Source: Convolutriloba macropyga
Taxonomy: Eukaryota
DNA length: 64,000 nt
NCBI RefSeq assembly: GCF_964194025.1
Contig: NC_134479.1
Span: 30,442,001-30,506,000, forward strand
Direction: 5' to 3'
The notes below the pieces were generated by a model. That model made no database searches. It was given only the letters and a program-made list of their open reading frames with translations, and was not told the origin of the DNA. The position numbers were made by a program, and so were the translations under genes. Of the stretch, positions 16,689 through 59,287 are shown piece by piece (positions within the stretch are counted from its first letter, which is position 1; the number at the start of each line of letters is the position of its first letter).

Positions 16689-16779
16689 ATGGAATCCGAT
16701 GTTAAAATCACCATGGAAGAATTTGTGTCTAAAGTCAATCTGTTGCTGAGGAAAGCTGAACAACATTTCGCTGCTTCAT
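16689..16779 (+). CDS. SELENOL: SelL coding exon 1 (MESDVKITMEEFVSKVNLLLRKAEQHFAAS-)
   Basis: ATG at 16689 in AAAATGG context; donor T|GTGAGC, phase 1 matches exon 2; helical N-terminus like SelL; candidate upstream acceptors at 16624 and 16681. Confidence 0.8.
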
Positions 16780-19700
16780 GTGAGCTAAATGTCCAATATA
16801 TCAATTGAGTTTTCGATTTTGCTGTTTAGTTAAAGGCTACAATATTTTATAGGCTCTGAAGAAAACTCCTTAGAAGTCATGAAATCACTGGGGCCATTCA
16901 TGTTTCCGATTATGGTCGCATATGCCGATATGTTTACAAAGTTAGTTCATAAAAGTGGTTTGAATTGTGGGCTTTCAGCAGAGACATCGGACCATCTGTT
17001 TAGATTGGAAGTTGACAGCGCATCATCATTCGAGGCAGTTGTTAGCAAGCAATACAGGTACGCTCGGTGATTACTCAAAGCATTAGTAGGATTTTAAATC
17101 CTTCATCATTCGCAATGATTTTGATTTAACGGTATTCGAAGTTGATTTCACATTGATCGCTCCCCTCAATCAGAGTGTCAGTCTATGTATATTAAGTGTA
17201 CAGACCATCCGATAAAGATTGATTGAGTGAATATTTTAGAATTTCCAAGACATGGGTGATTGAGCATCAATTTAAAGTACCAGCATTTTCCCCTCTAGCT
17301 CCATACTTGTTCAGCGATTTTTGAATCGTTGGCTGATCTCAATTTCACGGAAAACGCTATAAGTAGCACTTGAGCACAAATTTAAACAGCACGGCCTTTA
17401 TGCTTAAGGGGGCACAGAAAAAGGGTCAGTGAACGAAAGAGTGAGTTACAACGAAACAGACGTTCATTAATCGAAAGTGCTGATGAAGCAAGGTCAATCA
17501 TCAACAATGTGTTGATGCAATAAGTTAAACAAACCGAAAGAAAGCTGATGAAAGAAAGAAGGATCCTTGACCTTAGATCTTTGTTTGTTGCTAAACCCAA
17601 CAGTTGATGAAAAAGTGCTGCTCCAAAGAAATATGAACCTGTGAATTGATTGCCCTCGTTGAGTAAAGAGTTCATTGGAGCATGAACAAGTTGAAGAATG
17701 TACTGTGCATCCAAGTCGTTAACAAATAGTACTGTTATTGAAAACTGATGAGCAGCTCCCCTATGATTGCTGATGACACGTTGATCGAGATAAATCACCG
17801 GAAAAGTGGGGTTGTATGTTTGGTTTTGTGCATCTGGATTTGAGAAAGGTTTTAACTATTATTGGATAAAGTAGAACAGACTGGCTGTGGGCTGAAATAT
17901 CAGAGACTGAGACTGTAACTAACAGTTCATCAAGGATCACTCCTAGGACGTTTGATCTTCTGTTTTAATGATATTCCTAACCTAGCTCTCAGAAGGAGTC
18001 AAGCGTATGGATGTGCAGGTGATGCCAAATTTGTAGCAATGGATCGCAATCTTTTTAATGAAGATATAATTGCTGTTGAAGTTTGTGAAATTAACAAAAT
18101 GAAATTGAAAGTAAATCGTATCTGCTGATCAAAGAAGCTGAGACCTTAAACCAGAACCGCTCGAGGTTGTATCAGAGCAAAAAGTTAGCGGTTGAGTGCT
18201 AGCCAGTAAGTCAAACTGGAAGGTAATTGCAGAAGAAATGCAAAGCTTGGAAAGCATAATGCTTTCTGAAGCGGAAAGATTCCGAGCTGTCCAACCGTAG
18301 TATGCAACAGATTGCATTTAAGGGCTATGAAGTACCAGTAATCTCATCAGCATCTCAGATCTGGAAGCCAAAATATTCAAAAAATGAAAAATAAAGATCT
18401 ACAGAAAAGAAAGAGCAATGGCGTAAATAAAATGAAAATCATGGGAAATGAAACACTTTTTTTGAAGTATATATATATAAGGTCAATGTGATTGACTCCC
18501 ATCCCAATTCAAATATTTTGTTTTCAATATTTTTTGTTTTTGTAGGAAATTGAGTTGTTTAGAATTCAAACAATTTTAATACATTTAATGTGTTCATACT
18601 TTATCTCGATAATCGAAAGCAAACCAAAATGCATGCAAAAAAACAGCAGAAAGGGTTTCATCTCAGTAGTATAAAAAGCGGACGAGAACCTTAACGGGGG
18701 GGGGGGGCTCTCACTTTTTGCAACGCGATTTTTTTTCTGACTGACAGCAACGGATGGGTCACTTAATTTTCTTGAATCATTGTCAAAAATGCCCCCCCCC
18801 CCCCTATTTATGATGTTTTTGTTAGCTTTATGCCCAGAATAAGCCTGTTTTTAGTCACAACTGCAGATTCTTTATCACAACTCTAGAATTACTGTAAACT
18901 ACTGAAGCAAATCTGTTTAATTATTCGTTCAAATAATTTTAATTGAGATTAAAATTTTCACTCAAACGATAAAGGTGTTTGCAAATTGTTTGCTGAGCTA
19001 CGAATCTCTAAATGGATTGTAAATGGAATGAGTGAATTAAACTAGTCTACAGAAATCACAAAGGTTTCGCACAAACGTTGACTGAAAAAGCATAACATTA
19101 CGTGCCTTGAATGAAACACCTAAGAATTGATGAAATTACAGAACCGGTTACCTGTCTGATTTGATTAAGCGAACAGTTTCTTTTCAATAAATAAAAATTA
19201 TCAAATCATTTAAGAGAAAAACAAGGTAATGAAATGTATTAAAGTTTATGTTTTGGAGCTCTAGTTTGTCAAACGTTTGGAAAAATGTGGCTTAGCAGAA
19301 GATCAAAGCTTAGATCAGAGGTTACTATAATGCATGAAATTAGGGCAAAAATAGCATCTATTAAGTAGTGGCGTCACTAATAAATAATAACTACCTTTGG
19401 AAGTACCCTTGGAAGGAGACAACCACAGATAAATTTTTCAGAAAGACTAAGAAACACAAAAGTTTTTATAACATATTTGGGACGGACTAATAAATTACAC
19501 TTGTCACATTGACCGCCTTAAGTATACTCAGGAAATCATTTTGCCTATTTGAATTAATAATGATGATACAAGCGTTTAAGATAAATAAATCAGTTCTCAG
19601 TTTTTTAGTTTTTTGTGTGTCGAAATTCGACAGCTTTTCTTTGCTTCCTTTTGTTTTGTCACTTCTTCTCTTAACCATTGAAGGTCTGTTTCGGGCAAAG

Positions 19701-22700
19701 ATCCATAATAGTGCATAGATGTTCTCTAATTAATTGGGCATCAATGATGTATTGATGACATAGCCGGCCCCATTTGCAGGATTGCAAAGAATAGTAAAGT
19801 AAGTCCATAAAATTAAAGACAATTCTTGGTTGAAAATGCAAACTTGGTGACCCATTAACAAAGAAACAAGTTTCGAGATAAACGAATAACTGACGTTACG
19901 CAAGAAAATCAACTTACGGATTTCAATGAACGTTTTTGCGAAGATAAACGAAGTACGTGAGAATAAGCGGTTAAAAAGCGTAATAAACCGATAAACGCAA
20001 AAAAATAAAGTAAACATTTCGCAAAACTGCGGATCCGCAGAAAATTTAACGAGGAGGTCAAAATATAGATGTCAATGCTCTGAGGGGAGTGACAGGTTGC
20101 TACGGTGTAGCAATTTTCTACCCGCGCAGAAAAAGCAAAATTTGAGTACAAATTGTCATGAAAAAATTGTTCTTTTCCTAATACCAGAACTTACAAAGAG
20201 GCGAACCTTGTAAATTAGTGTTTGAATCATTGATAAAAATTAGTCAGCTAGAACTTTGCTTAATTTAACAACAGGGCGAATTTTTTCCCCAAATGCGGTT
20301 TTTAGTTTAACGGATCTGACAATTTGGTCCGAACTAGGATATACTTCAATGACTTTGGCCAGTGGCCAAAGACCTCGAGGCGTGAAATCCTCTAAAACCC
20401 AAACTAGATCGCCTACTTGTAAATTCGGACAACCTTTAGTCCATTTCGAACGTTTCTGCTGGTTTGGGATATATTCTCTAAGAAATCTGTTCCAGAAGTG
20501 TTCGGCCAAGTGTTGTGAAGTTCTCCAAGACTTTGAGATTGTAATCTTTCTCTCGAAAAAAACACCAGGTGGAAAATTAACAGTGGGTCTGCCCAAAAGA
20601 AAATGGTTTGGTGTTAGGGGAAGTGGATCATTAATGTCACTCGAAGTGTATGTGAGGGGACGAGAGTTCATGTTAGATTCTATTTCGCAAGTGAAGGTAG
20701 ACAACGTTTCATGTGTCAGTGTTCTTGATCCAATGACCTTGTACAAAGACAATTTGAACACCTGAATTAGCCTTTCCCAACTGCCACCAAAATGTGGTGC
20801 AAAGGGAGGATTAAACTTCCATTCAATTTCAATATCAAGAATATGGAGTTTTGAGGCAAATTCCTTTGATGCTCTGAGTGCTTCGATACCTTTCTTTAGT
20901 TCCGTACAAGAGCTGACAGAAGATTTCCCGTTGTCGGAGAGAAATTTTTTTGGCTTTCCGCGGCGACTAATGAATCTGCGGATGCAATTCATTGTTGAGT
21001 CTGTAGACAGGTTTTCTGCTATCTCCAAGTGAACTGCTCTTACCACCAAGCAGGTGAACAGAAGTACGTAGCGTGTAGCGTGTCTGCCGCATTGAGATAC
21101 GGGGAAAGGACCTATGAAGTCGAGTCCTGTCGTCGCAAAGACAAAGTGGTGCTCACTTGGTAACCGCTCGCATGGTAGATCAGACATTTGAGGTTGCTGG
21201 ATTTCCTGTATCATTCGCCGACAAGGAATGCATTGGCGGACTGTCTGCCTAACGACAGCTCGGCATTTCAAAATCCAATAGTATTGCATAAGGAGGCAGC
21301 GCGTTTGTTCAACTCCTGAGTGAGTGTTAGTAAGGTGAAAATTTTTGATGAGCAGCTTCACAATTGGGTTTAGACCATCCAGAATGATTGGGTGTCGGGC
21401 AGTCTCCAAAACCGTTGCCTTGGACAACCGACCTTTGGCGCGGAGCTGATCATTATTGTCAACATACGGACAAAGGTCTTTCAAACGACTTGATGCTGAA
21501 ATTTCCTTTCCCTTACGTAGAGCAGATATTTCGTCTGCAAAATTTTCAATCTGCGATACCTGGATCAGATACCTGTACGCAAAGGTATGATGAGAGAGAG
21601 CCAAATGTTTGCTTCGCTTCTTGCAAAGGTCGCGGAAAAAGAAGCAGTACGCAGTCACTCTTATCAACTGATTCCAGTTGCTAAAACGTGTAATATCCAT
21701 TACACACCCTTCAGTTGACGGTTTAGGGGCTTCCAATGGCTGTATTGAGAATACCAGTGGGTTATGCTTCAAGAGATCTTGACAAGGCCACTCTTTTTCT
21801 TCGGAGCGGAGAAATGATGGTCCACTCAACCAACGAGAAGTTGCATTACTCTGTCGAACCTCATAGCCTCTTGAGCCGTCATCAGCGGGATTATCAGAAG
21901 AAGCGATGTAGCGCCAATTGAGAGATGAAGAGACGTCGAGAATCTTTGCTAGTCTATTGGCAACGAAAATTCGATGCCGCATTTCTGGAGTTCTCAACCA
22001 ATGGAGTACAGTTGTACTATCGGACCAGAAAAAGTAATTTCCGATTTCCAAATCTTGCTGTTCTTTGATAAACTGAGCTAATTGCGCGCCATACACTGCC
22101 GCTTGCAACTCCAGGTTTGGAATAGTCATCCTCTTGATCGGAGCTACTCTGGCTTTGCCCATCATGAACACTACATCAACTGTTTTATCAACGTACTCAG
22201 TTCTTAGATAAGACACTGCTGATAGAGCATACTCTGAAGCGTCTGTGAACGTGTGAAGAGCTGTTGACTGAATTTTCGTGTTTCTACGGAAGAGAGCACG
22301 TGGAATGCTGATATTCTGATAAGTTGGAAGTTCGTTTTTGAATTGGAGAAAGTCTGGGAACTGCTGAACGTCCAGAGGTGCGTCCCATTGTGGACCTTTA
22401 TTCCAAATCGCTTGCAAAATTTTCCTCACTCTGATTGTTAAAGGGGCTATAACGCCAAGGGGATCAAAAATTGAAGCGACGAACTTCAAAAGTTTCCTCT
22501 GTGTTGTGAATTGATCATTGGGGAACCTTTTGAAAAGCCTTTTGTCAATGATGTACTCGTCCGTGCTCGCGTTCCACGGTAAACCCAAAACTTTTTGAGG
22601 TTGAGGTGATGGTAGATCAGGCTTCAAAAGATTTTCGTTTGCGACGTTTTTCAAGAACTCGTCTGAATTAGAGTTCCACTTTGTGAGGTTGAAACCACCA

Positions 22701-25700
22701 AGTGAAAGGCACTCTTTGGTGCTGTTCATAACGTTTACAGCACTTTCAACGTCTGCTGTCGAGATATATAGGTCATCCATGTAAACATTACGCTCAATGA
22801 CGTGCAAAACTTGAGGAAATTTGTCCTGATTGTCACGTGCTGAACGACGAAGAGCGTAGGACGCTATGCATGGGGAAGATGTTGCGCCGAAGATATGATG
22901 TGTGTATTGATACTCTTCGATTTTGCCATTGTGGTTCCAGAGAAACCGAAGAAACGCACGATCAGAGGGAGCAACTTTAATTTGCATAAACATTTGCTCA
23001 ATGTCTGCTGAAATTGCCACTTGTTGCTCGCGGAATGTTAATATGACTCCCACAAGATTACTCAACAAATCGGGTCCCTTCAAAAGGTTTGAATTCAAGG
23101 ATTGACCCTGAAAAACACTGGATGCATTGGTGACTCTCCTGATTTTTCCGGGTTTGTTTTCATTTGAAACGGGATGATGAAGAAGATAAGAACATGCTGT
23201 TTCTTTGTCTGTAGCTGGATCAACTTTGACAACAACCATTTTGAAGATCTTTCTGGAGCGTCTCTTCGTACTTACTTTGTAGATCTGGTTTTGTTGAGAG
23301 TTTTTTGTTTAATTGTTTTAACTGTTTTTCTGCTAGCCATCTGTTGTTTGGTAACTTGGCGTTTTCCTTCCAAAGAAGGCCTATTTCGTAGTGACCATCA
23401 GAAAAGTTTGTAGTCGACTCAAGGATTTGCAGAGATTTTTCATCATTTTTAGACATAGCCCTTTTTGATGAAGCTATACCGTAGTTCTCAATTTTCATCC
23501 ACTGTTGTACTTTTGTGAAGAGTTCATTGTCTAGATGAGGATGAGAGTTGATTTGTGTTTTGAACACTGGATTCTGTTCGTCTGCTGTGACGCTAGTTTT
23601 ACCTGCACATGTCCATCCTAGAGGAGTTTCTACAGCCCAGGGCGTGTTTTTTGGGCCTTTAATCACCTTACTGTAATGGATCAGTTCCAGATTGTCGATG
23701 CCAATGATTATTGAGACTTTATTTTCATCAACATTGGGGAACGAAATGTGATTGAGATGTTCAAATTTCTTGCAAAGCTTGTTCAGCTCATTAGTGTTAA
23801 CAGGGTTCATATTCAAATCGGGTACTGCCAAGACTTCGTTTACAAGGATTGGTGTCTTATTAGACTGATAAGGTTTAATTTTTAAAGACACTGGAGAACA
23901 ATCTATTTCTTTTGTTGTGTGGTAGCCACTAATAGGCATCTTGCCAAAAGTGTTCATATCAATACCTAGAATCAGAGCTGCAGATTGGAGGAGGAGGCTC
24001 TGGCAACTTCCGTTGTCGAGATAAGCATATGTCTCAAACGTTTTCTCCCGGTTAGACAGTTGAACTGGTAAGAAAGCAACTTGACCTGTTCCATGCAGTT
24101 GAACCGATTTAACTGTTGAAGAGGGTCGGATTGCTTGATTTTTTGCAATGAAGCTTTCATGGAGCATTGTGTGGTGCTTTTTGCCGCAGTCTGCAGAGCG
24201 ACAAACATTTTTTGATGTGCATTGCTGTACATGGTGACTACCAAAACAGTTGAAACATAGTTTCAATTTTTTCACGTGTTCTCGTCTATCGAGTGGAGAC
24301 AGATCTTGGAAATGAGAACATTTGTATAAATACTGACAGCTACCGTTGTTTGGACAAACGACACCTTTCGCAGAGCTTGGTTGAAAGCTATTTGACGGGT
24401 TTGTGCGTTGATCCTGGTGTGATCTGTTGGACGGACGGTTGAATTGGGTTTGCTGATTCGATTGCTTCCAAAGATGGTTAGAGGCCTTTGAATGAGTGCT
24501 TGGAGGTTGAGCTGATGCACAAGAGGTTGGTAAATCTCTGCAAGCCTTCGCATAGATTAGAAGCCACTCCGAAAGCTCTCTCAGAGATGGTTGAAGTAAA
24601 CTTCTTTCCAAAACGTGCTTATTCCATTCCAAGCGGACTGGTGTTGGAAGCTTGTTTAAGGCTTGATTGACATTTGTAGTGGAATGTATGTCATAGTTGA
24701 ATCCAAGTTGCTGAAATGTGTCCACAAGGGTTAAAAGGAAAGCAGTGAACTGCGTATAACTGTCTGGGATTGTCAGGTTAGGGGGTCTAAAATGTGACAG
24801 TTTTTCGAGGAAGGCATTGACAATCCTGTTCGGATTACCAAAATGTTATTCCATACGTGCTAAAGCGGGTGCGTACAGACTGCCATTGCAGCCATAGCCG
24901 TCAACCAGTGCTTTTGCTTCTCCAATCAGGAGCGATTGCAGATGAATCATTTTTTCTGCAGAGGACATTGGAGAACGATCAATTGTTGCTTGAAACACAC
25001 TGAACCACTTTAACCAACTTAATGGATCTCCATCAAACTTTGTTGCCTGTAACTTCGGAACCGATTTCTGAAAACAAGAAGACATTGAGCTAGGAGTCTG
25101 AGGCACAATACCAACTGTTGGAAGTGTAAAGGATGGTTGCGAAGTTCTGATTGGCGGATTTAAAGAAGAAGTTTGGGCCGCCTGATGAGAAACATGGAAT
25201 GAGGGAAATGCGCCGTCGATTTTTGCGGAAGTGGAATTGAAGCCACCAGAGGTAACTCCAGACAAGGCATTGTTGATGGTGCTGGTGCCTGATACGTCAG
25301 CAGATGTGGTGGTGAGTTGTTGCGACAAATTTGCCGGCGGCAAAATTGTGTTTGAATCTCCCATTAAGCTACTGGGTGCAGCATTGTTAAGGAAGGATTC
25401 ACTGTAAGAACTGTATTCAGCGGGTGCTGAGAAAATGTTGGTCGTTAGGGATGCCTCAGTATGAGTTTGATAACTGCTGTTGTCAAAGGTCACCCTCGGG
25501 ATGTTATTTGTTTGGTTGCTTTGTGTTGCGGACACAAGTTCCTTTTTGTATTTTCGGTATGCGGAAGTAATCTTCTGTATCTTGAATTTGAGTTTGCTCA
25601 AATGAGAGCATAGAGTTTCTGCATCAGATGATGGTGCTTTGTCTAAAAGTTCTTGAATTGTAAGTTCGTACTTCTCCTGAAGTTCCTTGATTTCAAGGAG

Positions 25701-28700
25701 AGTTTCCTCGACTGTTTCTGAGTCCTCGCCGCAGTCGATGCCGGATGTAATAAATTCGATGCACGACTCGATTTCACTTTCGTACATCAACTTTAAGTTG
25801 GTCAGACGTTTTAAATGGGGATCTTCAGAGACCTGCTCGTGACTTTCGGTGTTGTCGTCTTAGTATTGTGTCTGCGAATTTGAGGAGATCATTGTTTGGT
25901 TGTTACTTCCTGTGGATTTTCCAGTTCTAGTAAAAACCATCGGATTTCACCGGTCTAACAAAGACAGCTTCTTTCTTCGAAGCGCTGCGAAATTTTTTCA
26001 GCAAGTCTGTTAGATACTGCAAAACCTACCTGGTAAACCTACCTGAATACCTAAAAACCTACTAGATACCTACCTGAAACCTAACCAGAGACCAAATTGA
26101 AAACTACTTCAAAAAAAAACTAGCTGAATACCTAAAATCTACCAAATACCTACCTGGACCTACCTGCAACCTAACTGAAACCTACTCAAAAACCTACCGG
26201 ATACCACTGAAACCTACCTTATACCACCAGAGGAACCTACCTGAAAACCTAACCGATTACTTTAAAAAAAACCCTACCTGGATATGCCTACCTGGAACCT
26301 ACCTGCAACCTACCTGATATGTATTCAATAACCTACCAGATACTACCTAAACCTACCTGATAACACCAGAGAAAGCTACCCGAAAAACCGAAACCTACCT
26401 GAATACCCTACCAATGCCGACTCTACATAGCATTTGGAAAAAATATATAGTTCAGAATAAGGTCGTTGTTTTTCCGGACATAAAAACAAAGTGAATGCTG
26501 TTGAAACGTGTTTGGTGCGCTCGTGTGTGTTACGCTCGTTTCGTAAAATTGGGAACGGATATTAAAGCGCTCGGTCGGAATTACCGGAAAATGCAAGAAG
26601 GTAAAATTGTTGAAACATCGAAATTTTGTCAGTAATTTTTGGTCATATCCGGAAAAAATTCTCAGGTCGCAAGAAAGGGGTGATTAATCAAACGGGCGAA
26701 AAAACAACAGGGAAAGATAAATAATATTGAAATAAGAAAGCCCAGTTAAATATATGAAGCTCGTCTCGTGATGGAATGGGTGTTCTCCCGGGTGTTGGAT
26801 GGGATGGGTTTTTTTCTAAAATTTCCTTCTCTACCCTTTTTACGAGAAAAAAATCTTCGAGAAGGAAGTTTTAGATCCTTTGTCTTTTTCGTTGGGCGTC
26901 AGAATGTCACATTGACCGCCTTAAGTATACTCAGGAAATCATTTTGCTTTTTTGAATTAATAATGATGATACAAGCGTTTAAGATAAATAAATCAGTTCT
27001 CAGTTTTTTAGTTTTTTGTGTGTTGAAATTCGACTGCTTTTCTTTGCTTCCTTTTGTTTTGTCACTTCTTCTCTTAACCATTGAAGGTCTGTTTCGGGCA
27101 AAGATCCATAATAGCGCATAGATGTTCTCTAATTAATTGGACATCAATGATGTATTGATGACAACACTGAATATAAGCCAAGCTCAAAATTAAACAATTT
27201 CGAGAGCAAATGCTATCCATGTTTTTAAGCTAAGGTTCACTCCCTTTAAAAGGTTAAGTGTATGTGAGAATCATTGTTTTCAACAGGTAGTTTGATTTGT
27301 TTGAAATTATTAGCGAATTTGGCTGTCAAAATATCAATTTGGTTGTAAAAATATTTTTTCGTGCTTTTCTTGATAATCTAACAAACCCAATGAAATATTA
27401 CAAAAAGTTAACTTCGGGTTCAAAGGTTTCACCTCGCATTGTTTAGTAAAGCGTTCGCACCACAGCTTATTTTAAGCAATGAAATTTTGCTTCAGTTATG
27501 CAGCTTTTTGTTCTGTAAAATTGCTTTGTTATTTTGTCTTCATTTTTGGCTAGAAAATCTAACGGCCCGATGACGAAGTCTTTGCAACTTGTTTTCTGAG
27601 CACTGTCTCTTCAATTGCATAATAATTAGAATGAATGAACACAACTCAGGTGTAGATGTTGAAAACCGACCAAAGTAGGCGACAAACGATTTTTGAAGCG
27701 ATAAAAACATACCGGGACAAGCTCTGAACTGCCATGAAAAAGTTGAACAAAGAACAGAACTGGCTTTATGGCTGATTTAATTACCTGATGATTTTTTGTT
27801 CTTCCGCGGAAAAAAGTGGATGCCGAAACCCAAATCTTTGATTCAGTTGAATATTTGACCCTTCTGTCGTTTAGTATTTTCTGTTGCTGTCGTTCCTATT
27901 CCTGAATCCAATATATTTATGCAAAGCAATGGCTAAGCTTTCTACTCAATGATCTATAGCTCTTATACATATTAAGTTCTTTGTTCCTCATCGCATCAGT
28001 GGCTCGAAAGATGGATTCTCTAGTCTGTGGTCAAATCTTCTAGCTAGTATCAGATAATTCGTTTTCTTCCGAAGTGTGAATCAACTCCGATGCAAAAACA
28101 ACAGTTCTCGTTTTTCGCGGGAGCTAAGAATACGATCACTCAAAAACGCCATTTTGTGTTTGTTTATTTTTGCTTGATTCATGTTTTCTTGTCAAATTTT
28201 TTCGATGTTTCAAAATGATTCTGTTGGGAACTACGGTTCGTGGAGAAATCTGTTTTTTATTTAATTGAACGATTTATCTTTGTAAATTGCTCTCAAACAG
28301 TGTTTGCATCAATTGTATTAGTCTTATGGTCTTTTCAGAATTTATGCTGCTTGTGACCAATTGCTGTCTTTCAGAATTCATGCTGCTAACTTAATGCAAG
28401 GTTGTGTACTTAATTCAAGGTGGTGCAGTCTAATAACATGCGCTAAAATTGGTTCCATTTTTCAGTTTAAGTCGTATAAATGATCTTTGATAAGCTCTAG
28501 TACTATAATTTTGAGGCCCTATACAAGTACTTAATGTTAATTTTGTTCTAGGTAGTTTACTGCTAAAATTCAAATCCAGAGTGCACCAAAATTGGTTCTA
28601 TTTATCATTTTTTGCCTTAGAAGTGGTCCATTATAAGCTATAATACCTTAAATTTGAGCCTCTTGTCTCAATTATACTCTCTCCCTTGCTGAAGTAGGGA

Positions 28701-49700: not shown

Positions 49701-52700
49701 AGTCTTTTTTTCACCCAAACGCCAAGAAGGCATAAAATCATGGTGTAAATTTTGACAGTTTTAGACAACCTACACGCCCTCCGCATTTTACCTCCCTTTC
49801 TTGCATAATGAGCCTGAATGACTTTTTGTCTTATTGTACGCTTAACACGTCAAACATTTTCAAGTTTTTAAACTGACAGCTTCTGCTTAGAACATATATA
49901 TGAAAAAAGAATTCCTGTCATCTCGAAGTTGCTGGGTGAATGAGCGGTCTGTATAAAGGAACGATCAAATGTTCTTTTAAAAGCAAGATAAGTTTTTGCC
50001 TGTCAAGATAACAACTGGGAAAAGTCGATTTTGTTTTGAAACAAAATCTGCACCCTCATTTTTAACATTGACAATAGCAGATTACGCATTTGTTCTTTTC
50101 TTATAATGAAGCAGTTTTATTTCAAGAACTTGAGAGCAATTCGCCCGACGTTAGTCGGTATGTTCTAATATCTGTGCACTTTTTCCGACTTCAATGAGAT
50201 GTAAAATTTATGTCGTGGTTTTTGTTGCTCTGAAGTATAAAAGAAGCGAAAAGTGAGCTTTTGAGACGTGAAATCTTCTCGCGCTGTATTAAGTGGTTTG
50301 ACCAAACTGTGTTTCAACCATTTTTCAATTTTGGAGATTTTTGCTCGTGCAAAAATTTAACCTGTTTTTGCTTGTTAATAGCCCCCTTCATCTTCTCAGC
50401 CGGCTATTATAGCGCTCCTATTTTTTTTACAATTCAAAGAATTTGAATTGTATTGGGGCGCTGTCTTTTTTTAAGATCTGTTCACACATTTTCATGATTT
50501 TTGACGTCAAATTGGAGTAGTGATTTTGGTCACGCCGAAACAGGAAATGGAGCGAAAAAGCGACTGGTTTTGCGGCGTGAATTTTTTTCGCTCTAATTTT
50601 GAAGTAGAGTGCGAAAATGGTATTTGAACAAAAATTCGGTTTCTCGGTAGTGGTTTTTTGTTCACATGCGGCAATTTCACTGATTTTTAATGTTTTGCGA
50701 TTTTTTGGATCGGATTTTTTTCTAAATGGTTTTCCCAATCCATTGACAGCTTATTCTAGGTCTAGTTTTTTGTTTGAAATAAATTTTCATTTCTCGCTAG
50801 TGGTTTTTTTGTTCACATGCGGCATTTTGACTTTGATTTTTTGTTTTTTTTTATCTGATTTTTAAAAAATGGTTTTCTCATTGCACTCATAGTCCATTTT
50901 AGGTCTAGTTTTTCTGTTTAGTCAATGAAAATTCTTTGAATTGTACGTCAGGACTCGTCCTGCTATGTTTTTTTTACTTCGTCGAACAAAAGAAATGTTT
51001 CGCTTTACCTCATTTTGTCGCTTTTTCAACATTTTGCGTGAAATATTTTTGACTTCTCTAGGCTAGTTTCTCTCTTCTCTCATTCTGTTAAAAGTGATTT
51101 TGAACATCAGTTGCTCAGTAAAGCAATTCAAAATGAACAGAGTCAATATAAAAAATTGAAGTCAGAAACAGAAACGGGATAAACCCATAAAGCCCAATTT
51201 TAGATGCCCGCTATTTGAACGTCGTTCCTATAAGTCTTAGTTAACATCTCTAATGCTTACTGGTTATGATTGCATCCCCTGTAGCCTCTCTCTAAGAAAC
51301 AGAAGTATGTTCAACTACGAAATACCATCAAAATAAATCGGACTTAAAAAATGTTTTTGTACAAAAATCTTTTTTTTTTCAATATCTTCTATTCTTTCAA
51401 TCCCAATCATGCTTATTGGAATCAACGACGGCTATTTTTCGGCAATCTGCCGGGTATGTTTCTGATAAGTGCATTCAATATTTTTTGGGGTATTTGAGAA
51501 CTTGAACTTCTACGTAGTTTTTTGTTCCGTAGTCTTCGGTTTGTTTTTTACTAATACAATTTTTTTTCTTCGTGCCTCACCGTAAACCTGAATACATCAG
51601 TTTTGTTCACCTTTTCTGACCATTCTAACTGCTTTTACGTATCTGTCCGTCATTGGTTAAACTCAGTAGCTTTGTGTTGTAGCTGAAGTCGGCGACGATT
51701 TTTTAAATATCATAAATGAAATTCGAATGAGTTTTGGAAAAATAGTTATCTTCGCATCTCGGTTTACTCATTTGCTCCAGGAGACAAACGCTTGGGGTGA
51801 CACTAATTGTTATTGTCAAGTGGATTGTTAATTCTCAGTGTTTTAATCGGTTTTCCTCCTCAAATGAAAGTTGAAGTTTTTGCCTCACGTCTACAAAATT
51901 TTGCGACCTGATGTCTATAATCGAGTTTCCGACTAATATCCTTATTCTAAGTTCCGACTTATCTTACTCTATAAATGACTTTTTTTACTTCAATGTCAAG
52001 GTTCTCAAGTTTTTCAAGGTCAACACAGGACTCTTATGTAACGAAGGCTGTTACTAATAAAGTATCGCAACTAAAGAAATAATTAGGAGTGGTTTTCCAA
52101 AATAAATCGTTTACTAAGAAAATTCCGAATTTTTTAAATAGGTTTTTTAGATGGCGTCAACGACTCATCTACTATTCTGTATCTATATTCTATGGCAAGC
52201 AAATCTATTTCGCAATGTAAAAGGAAGACCAGGATGAGGATGAAGACCAAGTCTACCCTCCTCCGCCTGGCGGTTTGAACCCCCCCCCCCCTCTTCCTCT
52301 CTCGTCCAACCCCACCACCCTACATGCTTGCATCTCTGAGCCCCAGCTGTGTACTACCGAAGCCAAACGCTCGTTGGTCGTTTGAGAGCAATTCGCTCGA
52401 CGTAGACGGTTATGTTTGATAACTATGATCCTACGCGTTCTTGGATTTTAGCGTTAGGCATTCTGACTTGATTTCATCAAGCGATGTTTCATGTTTACAG
52501 GCCATATGGCGTGATCTGAGGGTGCGGTTAGTCATTGTGTCTTTTGGATCACCGAAAGGTCTTAGACTGTGGCAAAAAGACATGGAAATCCCAGACGCAA
52601 ATGTTTACGGATGTACTGTACAAAGACTCGAAAAGAATGATCTAGAAGTTAAGACAGAAAACAAAGCTGGTCAAGACGACAGAATCATTCTATGCACAGA

Positions 52701-55700
52701 CCAGCCACGCGTGGTGAGCGGATTTTCTTGAGAAATGGGTTTTTTCTATCTCTTAGTAGTTTATACTCTGTATTAGATCAAATTAAGAGATGAAATGAAT
52801 TTTAACTCAAAATGACGATATTACTCTACTTTGTAATAAAAGAAGTTTTTAGATCTAGTAACAGAACTTCCATTGTTTACAATTGTTGGTTAAGAATCAG
52901 TTGTGTGTTCGACTATTTGCATAAATTGGCTAATAAAATTTATTTTGCTTTATTTACCAACTGCATCTGGTCACTCACTGCTCGTCCTGACAATTTTTTG
53001 AACTTTTTTCCGTCTATTGTGCCCGTTATATTAGTGGGCATATAACTTGCTACCCCACGAGCACGTGCTACCTTTGTACATAGTAACGTTCTATATAGCT
53101 CAAGGGGAGGCAAAACAGTACAGACCCGTCTCTCTTCATGATTTCAGAGTAGAGAATAATTTCTACCAATTTGAGTAATAAAAAGACAAGGAGGCTCGTT
53201 AATATGCGTTCGCACATGATATTCGGACCCGAGCTCATCTACATTTTTGAATTAATTGACAACCAAAAGAAGAGATAACACAAATACATGTTTGAGTTTA
53301 AAACAATCGTTACACAACCTATTACAGCCTCATTACAGCGCCAATCAGATCTGACATTAAAGAGACTACGAGACGAAAAAAAAACAAACAACAAAATTAG
53401 CAAAAACAAAAATTTCACGGCAAAAACAATATCTAAATTTGGAAGCACATTGTAACAACGTCATAATGCAGTCAGATAAAACCTTAACTACTCAAAATCA
53501 CTTTCTCCTATCTATACAACAGATGGAAAGTTTTTTAAATGAGACTAAGTAACAAGTCAACAACGAGAACGAACAATGAGGCGAAATTCAAAAATTAATC
53601 AACATTTTTTAAACCAAGAAATTTCAAGTCTTAAAAATCATCAGTTTTTAACCAACTAATCCTTGATGAGTTACTAAAAAGTCATTACAAAACCAAGAGG
53701 ACTTGTCTTTGGGTAGACTAAATCATATAAATGAACTAAAGAAAATCTTAAAAAATACAAACGTTTTGCGAAAGCACAAACTTTTGCTACCATTAAAATC
53801 ATTAGCTATTATCTGATTATTGTATTTTTAATTCAATTCTTATTTCTACTAATTCAGCTGAAGGAATTATACTGAGAGATTAAATAAGTGTATTTGGGCG
53901 ACATTTGAAAACCACTGGGATCTATTACTACGCGATCGTTCTGAAAGAGGAGAAAAAGGAACGCAAAAGCAGCAAATTCAAGAAAAAATTGAGCGAGAAA
54001 TGTGTCGAAGGCATTAAAAATTGAATTTTTAACTAAAAACTTTTGAATGTTCAATAAATTTTTTAACAGCAAGCTGATATCTCTTTTTTATCAATATAAC
54101 TTCAGAAAATCAAATCTGAGGTAATACATTAGAACCACGAAATTTTTGAGAAAACTCGGGGATATCAAGGCCATTAAATTCATTAGCTTTCTTTCAACGG
54201 AAGCCACTGAATACGCTAAATTATGCCTCGATTGGACAACATGTTTGTTTGCCATTGATATTTCCTCAATAAGACCTCACAACAAGTTTTTGACGATGAA
54301 AACGACAACAAAGACAGGCAAAAACCAAAAATTCAGTAGAAAAGTGCCAGAAGAAAGTGTCGAAGCAATTTAAATCATAATCTCTTCTCCGAAAACTTTA
54401 TCTATGATCCGTTGAACGTCTTCCCTAAACGAATGAGAACTATTAGTAATAGTATGATGTGATAAGATTTCAAAAGAATCCAAAAATAAAAATTTATCCG
54501 AAAATTTACATTTATATGAAAACTCGTGGCATTGAAGTTTTAAAACTAATAGGTATAAGATAAAACCGCTAACCAGATTAATTTTGGCTGCAGTAGGAAA
54601 GAAAGCCTGTAGGTACTAAGACTGACTAAAAGTTCACGAAAAAGGTTTAGGATTAGTTAATTTTCAAAAAATATTTCAAAAAACTGTTTTTAAAGTCTTT
54701 AACAGTCATTAATCTCAAAAGCACAGTCATTAAAGTCATGTTTTTCATGCATAGATAATCAATAAGACATCACAATAGGTCTCAAGACTACAAAAACAAC
54801 AACAAAAGCAATCGAGAACCAAAATTCAGTAGAAAATGCGAGAAGAAATGTCGAAGCATTTAAACCATTAGCTTTTCTCTGAAACCTTTTATCTGTGAGC
54901 GACTGAATGCCTTCTCTAAGCCAATGGGATTAAAATAATATTTGGATAATGTGTATAATATTTGGATAATGTGTGTAATATTTGGATAATGTGATAAGAG
55001 TTCAAAAGTAACCAATAATACAAAAATATCCAAAAAAAATCTTTAAAAACTTTGAAATCTTGTGTGATTGAAGTCATATAACTAAAAGTTAGAAGATAAA
55101 AGCGCTGACCAGTTTAATTTTAGTTGCAGTAGAATGCAAATGGGTCCTGTCAATACTGCGACTCACTAACAGTTCACGAAAAAAGTTTAAGATTGGTTAA
55201 TGTTCGAAAAAAATATCGAAAAATTATCTTTAAATTCTTAACAGCCATTAAATTCAATAGCTTTCAACGGGGTCAATAAATATGCGCAAATATGACCCGA
55301 TGTGAGTACAGGGATGTTTTTGATGCATAGATGATCAATAAGACATCACAACAAGTCTTATGACTATGAAAACGAAAACAAAATCAGGCAAATACAAAAA
55401 ATTCAGTAGAAAAGTGCGAGAAAATGTCGAAGCAATTCAAACCATAAGATTTTCTCTGAAAACTTTATCTGTGATCCACTGAACGTCTTCTTTAAGCTAA
55501 TGAGATTAGAACAAAATTTGGATAATGTGATTAATATTTGGATAATGTGATAAGAGTTCAAAAATAACCAATAATACGAAAATATCCAAAAAATTTTTAA
55601 AAAGTTAAATCTTGTGTCATTGAAGCCATATAACCAAAATTTTGAAGATAAAACCGCTGACCAGATTAAATTTATTTGCAGTAGAAATTAAATGGGTGCT

Positions 55701-58700
55701 GTCAATACTGAGACTGACTAACAGTTCACGAAAAAAGTTTAAGATTGCCTATTATTCAAAAAAATTTTCGAAAATTTATCCTTAATTTCTTAACAGCCAT
55801 TAAATTCAATAACTTTCAACGGAAGTCAACGAATACGCTCAAATATAACCCTATGGGAGTATGGGGACGTTTTTCATGCATAGGTGATCAATAAGACATC
55901 ACAACAATTCTTATGACTATGAAAACGAAAACAAAATTAGGCAAATACAAAAAATTCAGTAGAAAAGTGCGAGAAAATGTCGAAGCCATTCAAACCATAA
56001 GATTTTCTCTGAAAACTTTATCTGTGATCCACTGAACGTCCTCTTTAAGCTAATGAGACTAGAACAAAATTTGGATAATGTGATTAATATTTGGATAATG
56101 TGATAAGAGTTCAAAAGTAACCAATAATACGAAAATATCCAAAAAATTTTTAAAAAGTTAAATCTTGTGTCATTGAAGCCATATAACCAAAAGTTTGAAG
56201 ATAAAACCGCTGACCAGATTAAATTTATTTGCAGTAGAAATTAAATGGGTGCTGTCAATACTGAGACTGACTAACAGTTCACGAAAAAAGTTTAAGATTG
56301 CCTATTATTCAAAAAAAATTTCGAAAATTTATCCTTAATTTCTTAACAGCCATTAAATTCAATAACTTTCAACGGAAGTCAACGAATACGCTCAAATATA
56401 ACCCTATGGGAGTATGGGGACGGTTTTCATGCATAGGTGATCAATAAGACATCACAACAATTCTTATGACTATGAAAACGAAAACAAAATTAGGCAAATA
56501 CAAAAAATTCAGTAGAAAAGTGCGAGAAAATGTCGAAGCCATTCAAACCATAAGATTTTCTCTGAAAACTTTATCTGTGATCCACTGAACGTCTTCTTTA
56601 AGCTAATGAGATTAGAACAAAATTTGGATAATTTGATTAATATTTGGATAATGTGATAAGAGTTCAAAAATAACCAATAATACGAAAATATCCAAAAAAT
56701 TTTTAAAAAGTTAAATCTTGTGTCATTGAAGCCATATAACCAAAAATTTGAAGATAAAACCGCTGACCAGATTAAATTTATTTGCAGTAGAAATTAAATG
56801 GGTGCTGTCAATACTGAGACTGACTAACAGTTCACGAAAAAAGTTTAAGATTGCCTATTATTCAAAAAAATTTTCGAAAATTTATCCTTAATTTCTTAAC
56901 AGCCATTAAATTCAATAACTTTCAACGGAAGTCAACGAATACGCTCAAATATAACCCTATGGGAGTATGGGGACGTTTTTCATGCATAGGTGATCAATAA
57001 GACATCACAACAAGTCTTATAACTATGAAAACAACAACAAAAACAAGCAGAAACCAAAAATTCAGTAGAAAAGTACGAGAAAATGTCGAAGCCATTTTAA
57101 CCATATGGTTTACTCTAAAAACTTTATCTGTGATCCACTGAACGTCTTCTTTAAGCCAATAGGAGCTATCAGTTTGAGGATAATGTGATAAGGTTTAAAA
57201 GTAACGAATAATACGGAAATGTCAAAAATTTTTTGAAATCTTGTGTCATTGAAGTGTCATTATAACTAAAAGTTAGAAGATAAAACCGCTAGTCAGATTA
57301 AATTTGGTCACAGTAGGACGGAAGAGGGTGCTGTGACCACTGAGACTGACTTTTAGTTCACGATAATAAGTTTATGATTGGTTATTGTTCAAAAAAAAAT
57401 TTTTCGATATATTTTTAAAGTCCTAACAGCCATTGGCTGTCCACTCAAAGCACTAGATATGTTCACCTAATGCTCATTACGGAACAAATTGCACGGTTAG
57501 TCAATGAGTTTATGCCATAAGATTCCAGAAAAATAGTAAAACCTCAAAAAGAAATAAAGAAATTCAAAATTTCATTTAAAATTACGAGTCGAAGCCAAAA
57601 AAAAACATGAGCAATTCCTTGAGAACATTTTTTTTGCTCATTCGACTGTAAAGGAGGTTTGTCATTAACGGAACCGGGATGTGAAAAGTGACTTGTCTCT
57701 AGGTGACTTAAAAAAGCAAAAAAAAGTAGAAAATTTTTATAGAAAAAGAGCTCTCAAAGAGTTTTTGATAGTGAACTTCCCTATGAAACCAGAAATAGTC
57801 TTTTTAATCGCTTTTAGTCTATTAGGAACACAAATTTGGTTCATTTTTTGGCGTGAAATTCAATTTTGAAATACTATTTTAGAAAATATCTTAATTTGAA
57901 GAAAAATCGCTTTAAAAGTAAACAAATATCGAGTGTTCACACAAAACTTCAATCCTCGATAACTCCTCGAAAAAAACGGAAATCAAAAAAATCTGTTTAA
58001 TTTTGAATTCTACGCTGGACCAGATTTTTAATGATACCACTCACATTTCTCTGCGATGAATATATCGATCGGCCAAAATTGTCTGAACAAAAAAACCCAT
58101 TTTAGTATATAGTTCCTCCCCCCCCCCCCCCCGCAAGTGGGGTCGGAACAAAAATTTAACTTACTTATTGGAAGCAACGTAGTTAAGGGATATTCGGTGT
58201 TTTAGATCTACAATTGGTTGGGTCTCCAGGTGTCATTTCGGAAAGTGTGGGTTAGTGAGACGATGAAATACTATGCGGGACAGAAACAACAGGGTGTGAA
58301 GTTCCCTCGACCGTTCGAGAACATCGAAGATGATACACTTCAGGTTCTGCCATACTTAATGGTGTTTTGATGCTACCGTTAAGTTTAGCAGTGCTACAGA
58401 TCGCTTTTGTAGGAAAGCATCCAGAAATGAAATTGTTTGTGCGGTATAAGATCAACTAGTTCAAAAGTAACTTATGAACATATATTAACAGAATTATTAA
58501 GAAAAGCATGAGAATATGCCATTGAACGAAAAGCTGGGACCATTTATGTCCTACTTATACGTATAAAAAAGAACAGCCTAATGTGAGTTGTCCATATACA
58601 TTAAATTTTAAAATGATACTATGATTTGATTCATATGGACTGACATCTAAGTGTATAACCTTTGGATGTAGTCGTGCAATTTGCAGCTTTGAAAAAAGTT

Positions 58701-59083
58701 AAGCAGACGACGCTTTGCAAATAGCGATCATTGTACAAAGCTGAAGTTTTGAAAATATAAAAATTTTGATGAAGCAAAATTTTATTCATTGGTACTAAAC
58801 TCAAAAGATGAAGCCGTAATATGATCCAAAGTTTTTGTAATAGTTAAAGAGCCGAATTCGTCTAGATCTGGGCAATATCTTAACCTGCTCTATTATGTTA
58901 TGGTTCAAACTTTAGATGGCTGGTGACTATTTGGTTGACCAGAATGGCACTCTGATTCTGTCTCACCCTCAGAAAACAGTTGCTGATAGACCGACTATTG
59001 ATGACATTGTCATGAGCGTCAAGAGAGCACTTGACTCGAAGAGGGATCAGAATGTGAGAAAAGAGATGGGCGCTGCTTCTTAA
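16689..59083 (+). CDS. SELENOL: Selenoprotein L (thioredoxin-like fold, UxxU); spliced CDS join(16689-16779,16853-16940,17004-17057,48157-48202,48536-48681,49153-49525,52501-52713,58206-58343,58916-59083), 1317 nt, 438 aa, Sec250 and Sec253
   Basis: All 8 introns are GT-AG with matching phases (1,2,2,0,2,0,0,0). The only in-frame stops are two TGA in LLRHFA-U-LP-U-RNH. SelL/AhpC-TSA-type motifs LVIVSFGS, D.PRVIYNWLGL, EDDTLQMAGDYLVD and DRPTIDDI are present, and a SECIS lies downstream. Confidence 0.93.
16853..16940 (+). CDS. SELENOL: SelL coding exon 2 (C-SEENSLEVMKSLGPFMFPIMVAYADMFT-K)
   Basis: Acceptor ttttatAG, donor AA|GTTAGT; ..AYADMF.. resembles the SelL N-terminal domain. Confidence 0.85.
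17004..17057 (+). CDS. SELENOL: SelL coding exon 3 (K-LEVDSASSFEAVVSKQY-R)
   Basis: Acceptor tgtttAG, donor AG|GTACGC; phase 2 joins exon 4 to give ...KQYRNAGVRE... Confidence 0.85.
17300..18380 (+). mobile_element. Old, heavily decayed LINE (CR1/L2-like) RT fragment
   Basis: QGSLLGRLIFC..NDIP...YGCAGDAKF (17930-18040) is a degenerate PQGSxLGPxLF...YADD RT core. Confidence 0.65.
19502..19760 (-). repeat. 3' LTR of BEL/Pao element
   Basis: TGTCAC...GATGACA; about 6 substitutions versus the 5' LTR; preceded on the minus strand by the purine-rich tract AAATGGGGCCGGCTA (19761-19775). Confidence 0.95.
20240..25940 (-). pseudogene. BEL/Pao gag-pol polyprotein with two nonsense codons (25860-25862, 24846-24848) and one frameshift (~23235)
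   Basis: ATG at 25940; gag FDGDPLSW and Cys-His knuckles (CFNCFGSHHVQQC, CRSADCGKKHHTMLH); protease YLDNGS; RT VYMDDLY; RNase H FTDAS; integrase HSG..C..C, GLDFIGP, SDNG, WERL. Confidence 0.95.
26020..26410 (-). repeat. Degenerate tandem array of ~11-bp AAACCTACCTG units in the BEL 5' leader
   Basis: About 12 exact CCTACCTG plus about 10 variants; higher-order ~140-bp repeat (26160-26250 versus 26300-26390). Confidence 0.9.
26890..26901 (-). promoter_or_regulatory. Primer-binding site (tRNA-Lys type)
   Basis: TGACGCCCAACG, 3 nt inside the 5' LTR; 11/12 match to the tRNA-Lys PBS TGGCGCCCAACG. Confidence 0.75.
26905..27163 (-). repeat. 5' LTR of BEL/Pao element
   Basis: Direct repeat of 19502-19760, followed by TSD ACACT. 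Confidence 0.95.
28885..33100 (-). mobile_element. Decayed CR1/L2-type LINE (ORF1 remnant, APE endonuclease, RT) with internal duplications
   Basis: APE motifs ICGDFNI and TDHYA (31876-32217); RT motifs NFRPIS, QYGFR, FLDLKK, GLPHCSVLGPLLF, LYADDT (29474-30269); AT-rich tail at ~28890. The 30240-31910 segment is present in 2-3 overlapping copies. Confidence 0.88.
31865..40758. repeat. Near-perfect tandem duplication of a 4447-bp unit (31865-36311 / 36312-40758)
   Basis: Six ORFs recur identically at +4447 (e.g. 31876/36323, 35126/39573); only one mismatch spotted by eye (34340 A versus 38787 G). Confidence 0.97.
33519..36311. mobile_element. Truncated duplicate of the Helentron-like (HINE) element at 37966-40854
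   Basis: Same left end (TTGTTCCGACCCCCACTTTAGTGGG); lacks the hairpin end because the duplication breakpoint cuts it. Confidence 0.7.
37966..40854. mobile_element. Non-autonomous Helentron-associated (DINE-1/HINE-like) element, ~2.9 kb
   Basis: Subterminal inverted repeat TTCCGACCCC (37970-37979) / GGGGTCGGAA (40809-40818); perfect hairpin TAATGTGCG-AA-CGCACATTA (40821-40840); end ...CCTTGT into a T run; no TSD; both ends match 53186-58154 in reverse complement. Confidence 0.78.
43123..43330 (+). mobile_element. tRNA-derived SINE
   Basis: A-box TAGCCGAGAGG (43131-43141), B-box GTTCAATCC (43175-43183), unrelated body, 3' hairpin GTGGC-TAAA-GCCAC and A tail. Confidence 0.7.
43541..43670. repeat. 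AT-rich minisatellite, ~28-bp unit (ATAGCATATAAATATATAAAATATAAAT) x ~4.5
   Basis: Direct reading of tandem units. Confidence 0.9.
44325..45400. mobile_element. ~1.1-kb non-coding interspersed repeat (MITE-like), copy 1
   Basis: Shares GATCTGTTCACACATTTTCATGATTTTTG...GTCACGCCGAAACAGG with 50375-51480, 61565-62460 and 62460-62830; AATAGC(C/T)GCC / GGCGGCTATT inverted motifs near the ends. Confidence 0.7.
45949..46082. repeat. 69-bp tandem duplication containing a 13-bp-arm palindrome
   Basis: TTATTACATTTCT-GG-AGAAATGTAATAA at 45955-45982, repeated at +69 with one mismatch. Confidence 0.9.
47400..48060 (-). mobile_element. Highly decayed piggyBac-like transposase fragment
   Basis: EQLFVD..LLPLK, PIR..GFR and F.DYY remnants in the order expected for piggyBac LSVDE.M.PFKG / KPIRFGFK / FDNYF; frameshifted. 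Confidence 0.45.
48157..48202 (+). CDS. SELENOL: SelL coding exon 4 (R-NAGVREAYESVLEFE)
   Basis: Acceptor tgtttcAG, donor GAA|GTTAGT; VRE..E..LE.E pattern. Confidence 0.88.
48536..48681 (+). CDS. SELENOL: SelL coding exon 5 (DELNNFSAEVDRQ...LTGPN-P)
   Basis: Acceptor gatttAG, donor CC|GTTAGT, phase 2 matches exon 6. Confidence 0.88.
49153..49525 (+). CDS. SELENOL: SelL coding exon 6, containing both Sec codons (TGA 49475-49477 and 49484-49486)
   Basis: TTT GCC TGA CTA CCG TGA CGT AAC CAC = FA-U-L-P-U-RNH; acceptor ttatttAG, donor CAG|GTATAA. Confidence 0.95.
50375..51480. mobile_element. ~1.1-kb interspersed repeat (MITE-like), copy 2
   Basis: Collinear similarity to 44325-45400. Confidence 0.7.
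52501..52713 (+). CDS. SELENOL: SelL coding exon 7 (AIWRDLRVRLVIVSFGSPKGLRLW...CTDQPRV)
   Basis: Acceptor gtttacAG, donor GTG|GTGAGC; VIVSFG motif. Confidence 0.93.
53186..58154. mobile_element. Helentron-associated (DINE-1/HINE-like) element, ~5 kb, carrying an internal satellite; opposite orientation to 37966-40854
   Basis: Starts ACAAGGAGGCTCG + degenerate hairpin + TTCGGACCC; ends GTGGGGTCGGAACAAAAA (subTIR 58139-58148); 57920-58150 is the reverse complement of 37966-38190. Confidence 0.78.
54150..57435. repeat. Satellite array, ~553-bp unit x ~6
   Basis: Anchor TCAATAAGAC at 54266, 54759, 55335, 55888, 56441 and 56994 (spacings 493, 576, 553, 553, 553); internal subrepeat TAATATTTGGATAATGTG. 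Confidence 0.95.
58206..58343 (+). CDS. SELENOL: SelL coding exon 8 (IYNWLGLQVSFRKVW...EDDTLQ)
   Basis: Acceptor gttttAG, donor CAG|GTTCTG; Y..LGL..S..KVW motif. Confidence 0.93.
58916..59083 (+). CDS. SELENOL: SelL terminal coding exon 9 (MAGDYLVDQNG...DRPTIDDI...AAS*)
   Basis: Acceptor actttAG; Q|MAGDY matches the family QxGGDF motif; DRP motif; TAA at 59081-59083. Confidence 0.93.
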   Translation: MAGDYLVDQNGTLILSHPQKTVADRPTIDDIVMSVKRALDSKRDQNVRKEMGAAS

Positions 59084-59287
59084 ACTCGGAAGTCTGAATT
59101 TAAGGACAGGATTGCAGACGTAGTTATTTATCTAATCACTGCAGAATAGACGAAATCAATGCGAAAGCAACCATTTTTTTCTCGTTTTGTAGTTGACGTG
59201 TTATTTTTAAAAATCGAAAAAAAAACGAAATGAATTCTGATAGTTCACTGGGACATTGATTGTCTTATGCCGTATTTTTCTCCTGAA

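Follow-up and report, generated by a model that had tools for sequence, protein, structure and literature searches.

A probable SelL selenoprotein gene with two in-frame UGA codons at its redox motif in the acoel Convolutriloba macropyga

Results

The 64,000-nucleotide stretch of Convolutriloba macropyga DNA analysed here (contig NC_134479.1 of assembly GCF_964194025.1, positions 30,442,001 to 30,506,000 of the forward strand; hereafter the window, with positions counted from its first letter) very probably contains a gene for the selenoprotein SelL (SELENOL). Its 3' exons, at 49153-59083 on the plus strand, would encode a peroxiredoxin-like thioredoxin-fold domain in which both active-site cysteines are replaced by selenocysteine (Sec, U). 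The codons, the exon geometry, the match to one family on both sides of the motif, the cysteines at both positions in relatives and two RNA structures are all seen directly. As Shchedrina et al. (2007) are summarised in PMC13134290, PMC3316567 and PMC4989117, SelL is a peroxiredoxin-like protein with a pair of Sec residues close together, which are able to join in a diselenide bond, and with one selenocysteine insertion sequence (SECIS); this one SECIS is used for two UGAs that lie two codons apart (PMC3316567, PMC4989117). An earlier note on this DNA, made from the letters alone, had proposed a SelL gene of nine exons and 438 codons that begins at 16689 and extends over 42 kb.

The in-frame UGA pair TGA-CTA-CCG-TGA, read as U-L-P-U, is located at 49475-49486 (+) at the CxxC position of the redox domain, and this sequence occurs a single time in the window, where 0 occurrences are expected. 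Upstream of it 136 codons are open in the same frame, and downstream the frame reaches a GT donor at 49526. We number the exon that carries the pair and the three that follow it as exons 6 to 9. All four have AG/GT borders and are in phase 0, and in the reconstructed joins the two TGAs are the sole internal stops, as the earlier note had stated. Exon 6 (49153-49525, +) has its best acceptor at 49153 and a GTATAA donor at 49526; exon 7 (52501-52713, +; 71 codons, phase 0 to 0) follows an AG at 52499-500 and ends at a GTGAGC donor; exon 8 (58206-58343, +; 46 codons, phase 0 to 0) lies between a ttttag acceptor and a GTTCTG donor; and the last coding exon, exon 9 (58916-59083, +), consists of 55 codons (58916-59080) and a TAA stop (59081-83). 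The residues after the second TGA sum to 13+71+46+55 = 185, which reproduces both the U253 and the total of 438 of the earlier model, whose last four exons are hence these. Within exon 6, the segment 49436-49525 has homology support, and the head (49153-49435) would encode a polar stretch of ~75 amino acids with no sign of constraint. We kept the head as coding because there is no in-phase acceptor with a pyrimidine tract nearer the UxxU core; an intron within it was ruled out, as the in-phase acceptors there all lack such a tract.

We compared peptides from these exons with protein families. The test peptides had 39-55 residues and were each built for one junction or for the motif, so that the scores are for pieces and not for the whole protein. 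The sole match of exon 9 alone in NCBIfam was NF040769, 'SelL-related redox protein' (E 2.9e-4, profile positions 139-171 of 173). A 48-residue peptide joining the exon 8 tail to the exon 9 head matched NF040769 only (E 1e-7, 31.8 bits, profile 132-170), with an alignment that goes 7 residues back over the junction and so takes in the last 7 residues of exon 8. With the two Sec positions written as X, the UxxU core also matched this family only (profile 24-48, E 3.9e-3, 16.8 bits), as did the exon 6/7 junction peptide (profile 26-75, E 1.6e-5, 24.6 bits), in which the first 24 residues of exon 7 extend the match. No second family appeared in the NCBIfam searches with these pieces, and the matched blocks are colinear in NF040769 (24-75, then 132-171). 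Between them 86 residues of this gene face 56 profile positions, which corresponds to one insert of ~30 amino acids, carried by exon 7. Writing Cys at both TGAs raised the NF040769 score from 24.6 to 39.6 bits (E 4e-10), compared with 26.8 bits for an Ala control. Since the gain was 15 bits with Cys and 2 with Ala, both TGAs sit on strongly conserved CxxC cysteines of NF040769; the profile thus has a conserved Cys at the two positions for which the earlier note had asked for TGA or Cys in relatives. At the level of sequence, two of the three 3' junctions (6/7 and 8/9) are backed by homology. The assignment to the SelL family and the double-Sec reading are supported by two separate parts of the gene that match only the SelL-related family, in colinear order, and orthology with animal SelL, rather than with a more general SelL-related protein, appears likely. 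The bacterial NF040769 family (173 positions) is the only one matched, and it has conserved Cys where this gene has TGA. This gene differs from it in being eukaryotic, split by introns and longer, and in having Sec for Cys.

Other searches gave little beyond this family. The middle of NF040769 (profile 76-131) had no detectable match, and the exon 5/6 peptide of the nine-exon model matched nothing in NCBIfam. A peptide from which the insert had been deleted reached NF040769 position 11, a gain of only 1 bit, and the N-terminal strands of the domain were not confirmed in this way. At E<=10, Pfam returned no AhpC-TSA_2 (PF13911, SelU/PRXL2), AhpC-TSA or Redoxin for any exon or junction peptide, the Cys form included, and single exons matched nothing in Pfam or PDB. 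In a comparison of language-model features, exon 9 fell among AhpC-TSA_2 clusters (0.81-0.83) and other thioredoxin-fold clusters, which we take as a lead only; exons 7 and 2 had no look-alikes in that comparison. When exon 7 was searched exhaustively with phmmer against 1.84 billion representatives, the only matches were a 49-residue open reading frame (ORF) fragment of the same species and repeat proteins.

A contig (L001) of an ENA assembly of the same species, found via the exon 7 ORF fragment, represents the second haplotype. It is 99.98% identical to the window over 49.7-62.7 kb and identical over 42.6-47.9 kb; 63 differing sites (3.4%) are found in 47862-49688, a block with a 47-nt indel at its end. 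Both TGAs are kept in the second haplotype. Long runs free of single-nucleotide polymorphisms (SNPs) within the block lie at 48135-48254, 48268-48428, 48869-49015 and 49419-49563, three of the four hold candidate exons or the UxxU core, and the core has zero haplotype differences over 49419-49563. The polymorphic block itself (~1.8 kb) spans the 5' part of the SelL gene. Its SNP-free run at 48268-48428 (160 nt) fits none of the reconstructed exons; an alternative exon (acceptor 48365) is one candidate role for it, a regulatory element another.

Two structures were found in the predicted mRNA. The first is a hairpin whose 5' arm begins at the second UGA (49483-49525, +) and whose 3' arm is the start of exon 7 (52501-52536, +). 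Taken from the last base before the second UGA, these 79 nt of spliced sequence have a folding energy of -36.3 kcal/mol (z -5.4); among 500 dinucleotide shuffles, 0 were equally stable. The unspliced continuation past exon 6 folds at just -9.5 kcal/mol. No other 79-nt window of the mRNA is as stable as the hairpin (mean -15.3, standard deviation 4.6), and when its peptide was recoded synonymously, the native sequence surpassed in stability 1000 of 1000 uniform and 999 of 1000 usage-weighted versions. The core stem, GAUCGCGCCA / UGGCGUGAUC, consists of ten bases from exon 6 paired across the junction with ten from exon 7, and it is therefore independent support for the exon 6-7 junction. The hairpin region is identical in both haplotypes. 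Sec redefinition elements beside the UGA in SELENON and SELENOP mRNAs enhance recoding and are not essential (PMC5727441, PMC3541580). The hairpin found here is likewise a stable stem-loop of coding sequence that adjoins or overlaps a Sec codon, and its synonymous sites seem tuned for pairing; unlike those elements, it has its arms in different exons, exists only after splicing and sits at a UGA pair. By analogy with them, it probably helps Sec insertion.

The second structure is a SECIS-like hairpin in the 3' untranslated region (UTR), at 59285-59420 (+). The segment 59280-59425 folds as one long hairpin (-37.3 kcal/mol, z -2.9), and the SECIS-like part, 59305-59398, starts 222 nt 3' of the stop. 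It consists of an AUGA (59305-08), a helix II of 10 bp with one bulged U (59310-20 with 59386-95), an unpaired AAA (59321-23) that begins 12 nt after the AUGA, a 3' UGAC (59396-99) and a long helix I. The helix II thus falls in the range of about 9-13 bp and is followed by unpaired AA, as in a SECIS. Eukaryotic SECIS elements of type II have a UGAN/KGAW core, an unpaired AA and an extra helix 3 (PMC3753652). The hairpin shares with them the AUGA...GA core, the 10-bp helix II, an AAA bulge placed 12 nt after the core, another helix above it and the long helix I. It was the best candidate on both strands of the window (128 kb), and in the 5 kb that follow the stop it was well ahead of all others. 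We consider it somewhat more likely than not that 59285-59420 is a working SECIS; the selenoprotein status of the gene rests more on the TGA codons than on this hairpin. An Rfam match to U7 at 59325-53 (14 bits) was noise.

For the 5' half, the earlier note had joined its exons 1 and 2 (16689-16779 and 16853-17057, +) to the SelL exons across a gap of 31 kb. Both look like real exons, with an AAAATGG context at the ATG, GTGAGC and GTACGC donors, an unpaired TTTCAG 7 nt before ATG 16689 and a GC skew that goes positive at 16 kb, and their link to the SelL exons is only a candidate. No family and no homologue were found for exons 1 and 2, and their protein-likeness is low, with features in exon 2 that are unrecognisable. 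A DUF7320 match of exon 1 (E 0.039) was gone on the longer ORF. A total of 438 codons needs two tiny exons, of 67 nt together, between exon 2 and 48940. In the 31-kb gap 83,773 GT-AG pairs of mini-exons keep the frame open, and even a fixed exon 4 leaves 58 or 35 candidates for exon 3. Given this number of fitting pairs, the fact that the exons 'join in phase' has no weight for the 5' half. The architecture of nine exons, 438 codons and 42 kb is therefore not supported, its 5' join being easily given by chance and its exon 2 being without recognisable protein features.

Two candidate exons lie nearer to the UGA pair. The one at 48157-48202 (+), with a ttttgtttcag acceptor and a GTTAGT donor, lies within the SNP-free run 48135-48254 and can be read in two ways: as a 46-nt internal exon that links exon 2 to 48940 in frame, or as a trans-splice acceptor (TTTCAG) 2 nt before ATG 48159, in which case the donor is at 48206. 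The other, 48940-49001 (+), has a strong T-rich acceptor and lies inside the SNP-free run 48869-49015; ATG 48991 is the first ATG after this acceptor and is in frame with the domain. This exon had no homology support in the NCBIfam peptide test. An 8-exon join through 48157-48202, with no mini-exon pair, is in frame and gives 431 codons (U243/U246); by our estimate, an in-frame fit of this kind arises by chance in about one case out of ten. The TTTCAG-before-ATG signature occurs 9 times on the plus strand of the window, and the longest ORFs are those at 16676/ATG 16689 and 48151/ATG 48159. Eight exons from ATG 16689 (431 codons), a start at ATG 48159 (333) and a start at ATG 48991 (300) are equally possible as the 5' end.

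The surroundings of the exons are rich in repeats. The 31-kb gap holds an apparently young long terminal repeat (LTR) retrotransposon at 19502-27163 (-), with LTRs at 19502-19760 and 26905-27163 that are 97.7% identical and minus-strand ORFs of 314, 501 and 999 amino acids, gag-like and then protease/reverse transcriptase/integrase-like. The gap also contains a tandem duplication of 4,455 bp (31858-36312 and 36305-40759, 99.9% identical), which is either of very recent origin or an artefact of assembly, and further repeats. A tandem array of a ~555-bp unit (~5.5 copies, 75-90% identity) at 54266-57434 takes up a large part of the exon 7-8 intron; with a period above 500, it escaped Tandem Repeats Finder. 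A 350-bp repeat (86% identity, same orientation) is present in two different introns, at 44458-44800 and 50424-50772. Upstream of exon 1, at 3966-11057 (-), there are several copies of a fragment of a reverse-transcriptase-bearing element, 90-98% identical and each with ORFs of 131-170 amino acids. A minus-strand ORF at 47417-47686, considered as a divergent neighbour gene, is AT-rich junk.

Discussion

Sec insertion, the function of the SECIS, the role of the splice-made hairpin and the enzymology of the product are what we infer from these features. A single SECIS-type hairpin would serve to recode both UGAs; it lies ~220 nt into the 3' UTR and, in the mRNA, 791 nt downstream of the first UGA. 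The other hairpin, which starts at the second UGA and needs exons 6 and 7 to be joined before it can form, would probably assist in the manner of a Sec redefinition element. By analogy with zebrafish SelL, we expect as the product a redox protein with a U-x-x-U pair able to close into a diselenide. To our knowledge, no natural family other than SelL has a Sec-x-x-Sec pair capable of forming a diselenide; what SelL does is still an open question. We regard it as a tentative and rather doubtful idea that the recoding apparatus, and not the protein, is what is unusual here. It would comprise a SECIS helix 3 of 62 nt that contains AAUAAA, so that Sec decoding could be turned on or off by which poly(A) site is used, and a hairpin made by exon 6-7 splicing that engages the second UGA and maybe aids the insertion of two adjacent Sec; should the 5' join from 16689 prove real, the protein would in addition be fused to a new N-terminal region of ~130 residues.

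The gene resembles the SelL of fishes and marine invertebrates in its peroxiredoxin-like thioredoxin fold, its Sec pair two residues apart at the CxxC position, its marine animal host and its being a gene of a kind usually missed or truncated. It is unlike them in an insert of ~75 amino acids before the redox strand, another of ~30 in exon 7, maybe an added N-terminal region, and a SECIS candidate with a 62-nt apical extension and a UGAC 3' core. A number of observations weigh against reading this gene as SelL, and several of them concern that SECIS candidate. In its favour, a scan at the candidate's own stringency expects 0.025 hits per shuffled window (128 kb, both strands), a figure that flatters, since the strict thresholds were fixed after the candidate had been seen; a looser version found 12 against ~6 expected. 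Against it, Rfam reported no SECIS at the gathering score, none with E<=10 in 59000-64000 and none with E<=10 on a 241-nt slice. In the kink-turn core the 5' AUGAC fits, and the 3' UGAC has K, G and A right and a C where W is due (KGAW, PMC3753652). The apical extension (59324-85, 62 nt) is far longer than usual and outside the usual length. An AATAAA at 59326-59331, in the internal loop of the apex, is followed by a GU-rich stretch, and the next AATAAA is at 60773; the poly(A) signal at 59326, if used, would cut the hairpin in two and remove its 3' half. Compared with type II SECIS elements, then, the hairpin differs in the 62 nt of its helix 3 and loops, in a 3' core that ends in C and not in A/U, in the AAUAAA inside it and in its lack of an Rfam score. 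The claim of a SECIS downstream thus holds in part: a SECIS-like hairpin, the best in the window, follows just after the stop, and it goes unrecognised by Rfam, its 3' core and apex being off consensus. The remaining points concern the protein. The exon 7/8 junction peptide had no match in NCBIfam, exon 7 alone had no homology support among 1.84 billion representatives, PDB or NCBIfam, and the NF040769 pieces sum (39.6 + 31.8 bits) to less than the 120-bit whole-protein cut-off of the bacterial model. Word-indexed searches for relatives gave no candidate for exon 9 or the exon 2 ORF and only the other haplotype for the exon 6 ORF, and exon 9 had pattern matches only, none of them confirmed, in bacterial and archaeal genomes and JGI metagenomes. 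In the head of exon 6 (49196-49418), 12 of 14 haplotype SNPs are nonsynonymous against a neutral expectation of 79%, which is neutral-like.

Could the TGAs be plain stops in a decaying peroxiredoxin-like gene of the Cys type, with a 3' hairpin that is there by chance? The missing Rfam SECIS, the poly(A) signal within the hairpin and the neutral evolution of the exon 6 head would fit such a gene, but both stops are TGA and fall exactly on two conserved Cys positions, 185 downstream codons are open across three introns with intact splice sites and the family match kept, and the core is identical in both haplotypes within a highly polymorphic block. The SECIS-like hairpin and the one adjacent to the UGA are moreover both present, well beyond chance, and we consider a dead or non-selenoprotein gene very improbable. 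It is very unlikely, too, that the gene is a UxxU variant of another peroxiredoxin-like-2 family (SelU/PRXL2A-C, Pfam AhpC-TSA_2) and not SelL proper. The two share a broad fold class, the feature search with exon 9 ranks AhpC-TSA_2 first among the named clusters and places the exon near them, and the R-H-F-x-C-x-x-C-[KR] context presumably resembles PRXL2C. Against this, hmmscan with Pfam found no AhpC-TSA_2 (PF13911), AhpC-TSA or Redoxin in any piece, not even in the Cys form, and the SelL-related model scored 31.8 + 39.6 bits. SelU proteins carry one Sec (UxxC); this gene would have two.

Where the gene begins is a separate matter. The nine-exon gene as first stated, from ATG 16689 to 59083 with 438 codons and a novel region of ~240 residues before U250, appears distinctly unlikely. 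It draws on the good signals and the 98-codon open frame of exons 1 and 2, on a GC skew that flips at 16 kb and stays positive over the supposed 31-kb intron, on the phase at the end of exon 2, which is that needed by the strong 48157 acceptor, so that a join via 48157-48202 stays open, and on acceptors at 48157 and 48940 that call for upstream sequence. Its two mini-exons are nevertheless arbitrary among the 83,773 valid pairs, or the 58 or 35 candidates with exon 4 fixed, and the 8-exon version does without both; for exons 1 and 2 there is no match to a family or protein, and exon 2 is unrecognisable. Under trans-splicing, unpaired acceptors require no upstream exon, and exon 2 may splice to 17390 and meet a stop after 14 codons, which would make it part of a separate small gene. 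About an even chance attaches to a short trans-spliced gene, with a leader added at 48157 (ATG 48159, donor 48206, 333 codons, U145/U148) or at 48940 (ATG 48991, 300 codons, U112/U115), and with exons 1 and 2 in another transcript. The TTTCAG 2 nt before ATG 48159 would suit this, as that site and the one at ATG 16689 have the longest ORFs among the start-like sites of the plus strand. ATG 48991 is the first after the strong 48940 acceptor and is in frame, with A at -3 and an in-frame TAG just upstream. The bacterial NF040769 proteins have 36 residues before the first Cys, hence a long N-terminus is not needed. The donor at 48206 (GTCTTG) is weak, though, the stronger GTTAGT at 48203 being out of phase for ATG 48159, and two upstream ATGs precede ATG 48991 if transcription begins near 48.1 kb.

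Overall, the gene is a new member of the already known SelL family, with lineage-specific inserts, an atypical SECIS candidate and a hairpin adjacent to the UGA. SelL has been found in five of six surveyed invertebrate phyla, in Amphimedon, Trichoplax, Nematostella, Capitella and Branchiostoma and not in Lottia (PMC3473315), and in nearly all non-tetrapod vertebrates (PMC13134290), and to call the family patchily distributed, as had been done, was an overstatement (PMC3473315, PMC13134290). SelL is missing from flatworms (PMC3828610), and we found no report of an acoel selenoproteome in the literature searched. SELENOL is among the worst annotated selenoprotein genes, with <1% well annotated in Ensembl (PMC12822975). 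This locus is represented in the databases only by an ORF that stops at the first TGA (P0008) and by a 49-residue fragment of exon 7 (P0001), which fits the expectation that annotation would truncate or split the gene. Besides going unseen by the Rfam SECIS models, the SECIS candidate would probably fail the apical-length filter described for SECISearch3 (PMC3753652).

The finding is solid but ordinary, and nothing in it changes what is known about the SelL family. The acoel copy adds modestly to the range of the family, and it is a further example of how ordinary gene calling loses such genes. Of more use as leads are the two RNA structures, of which the hairpin at the twin UGAs may be a helper of tandem Sec insertion.

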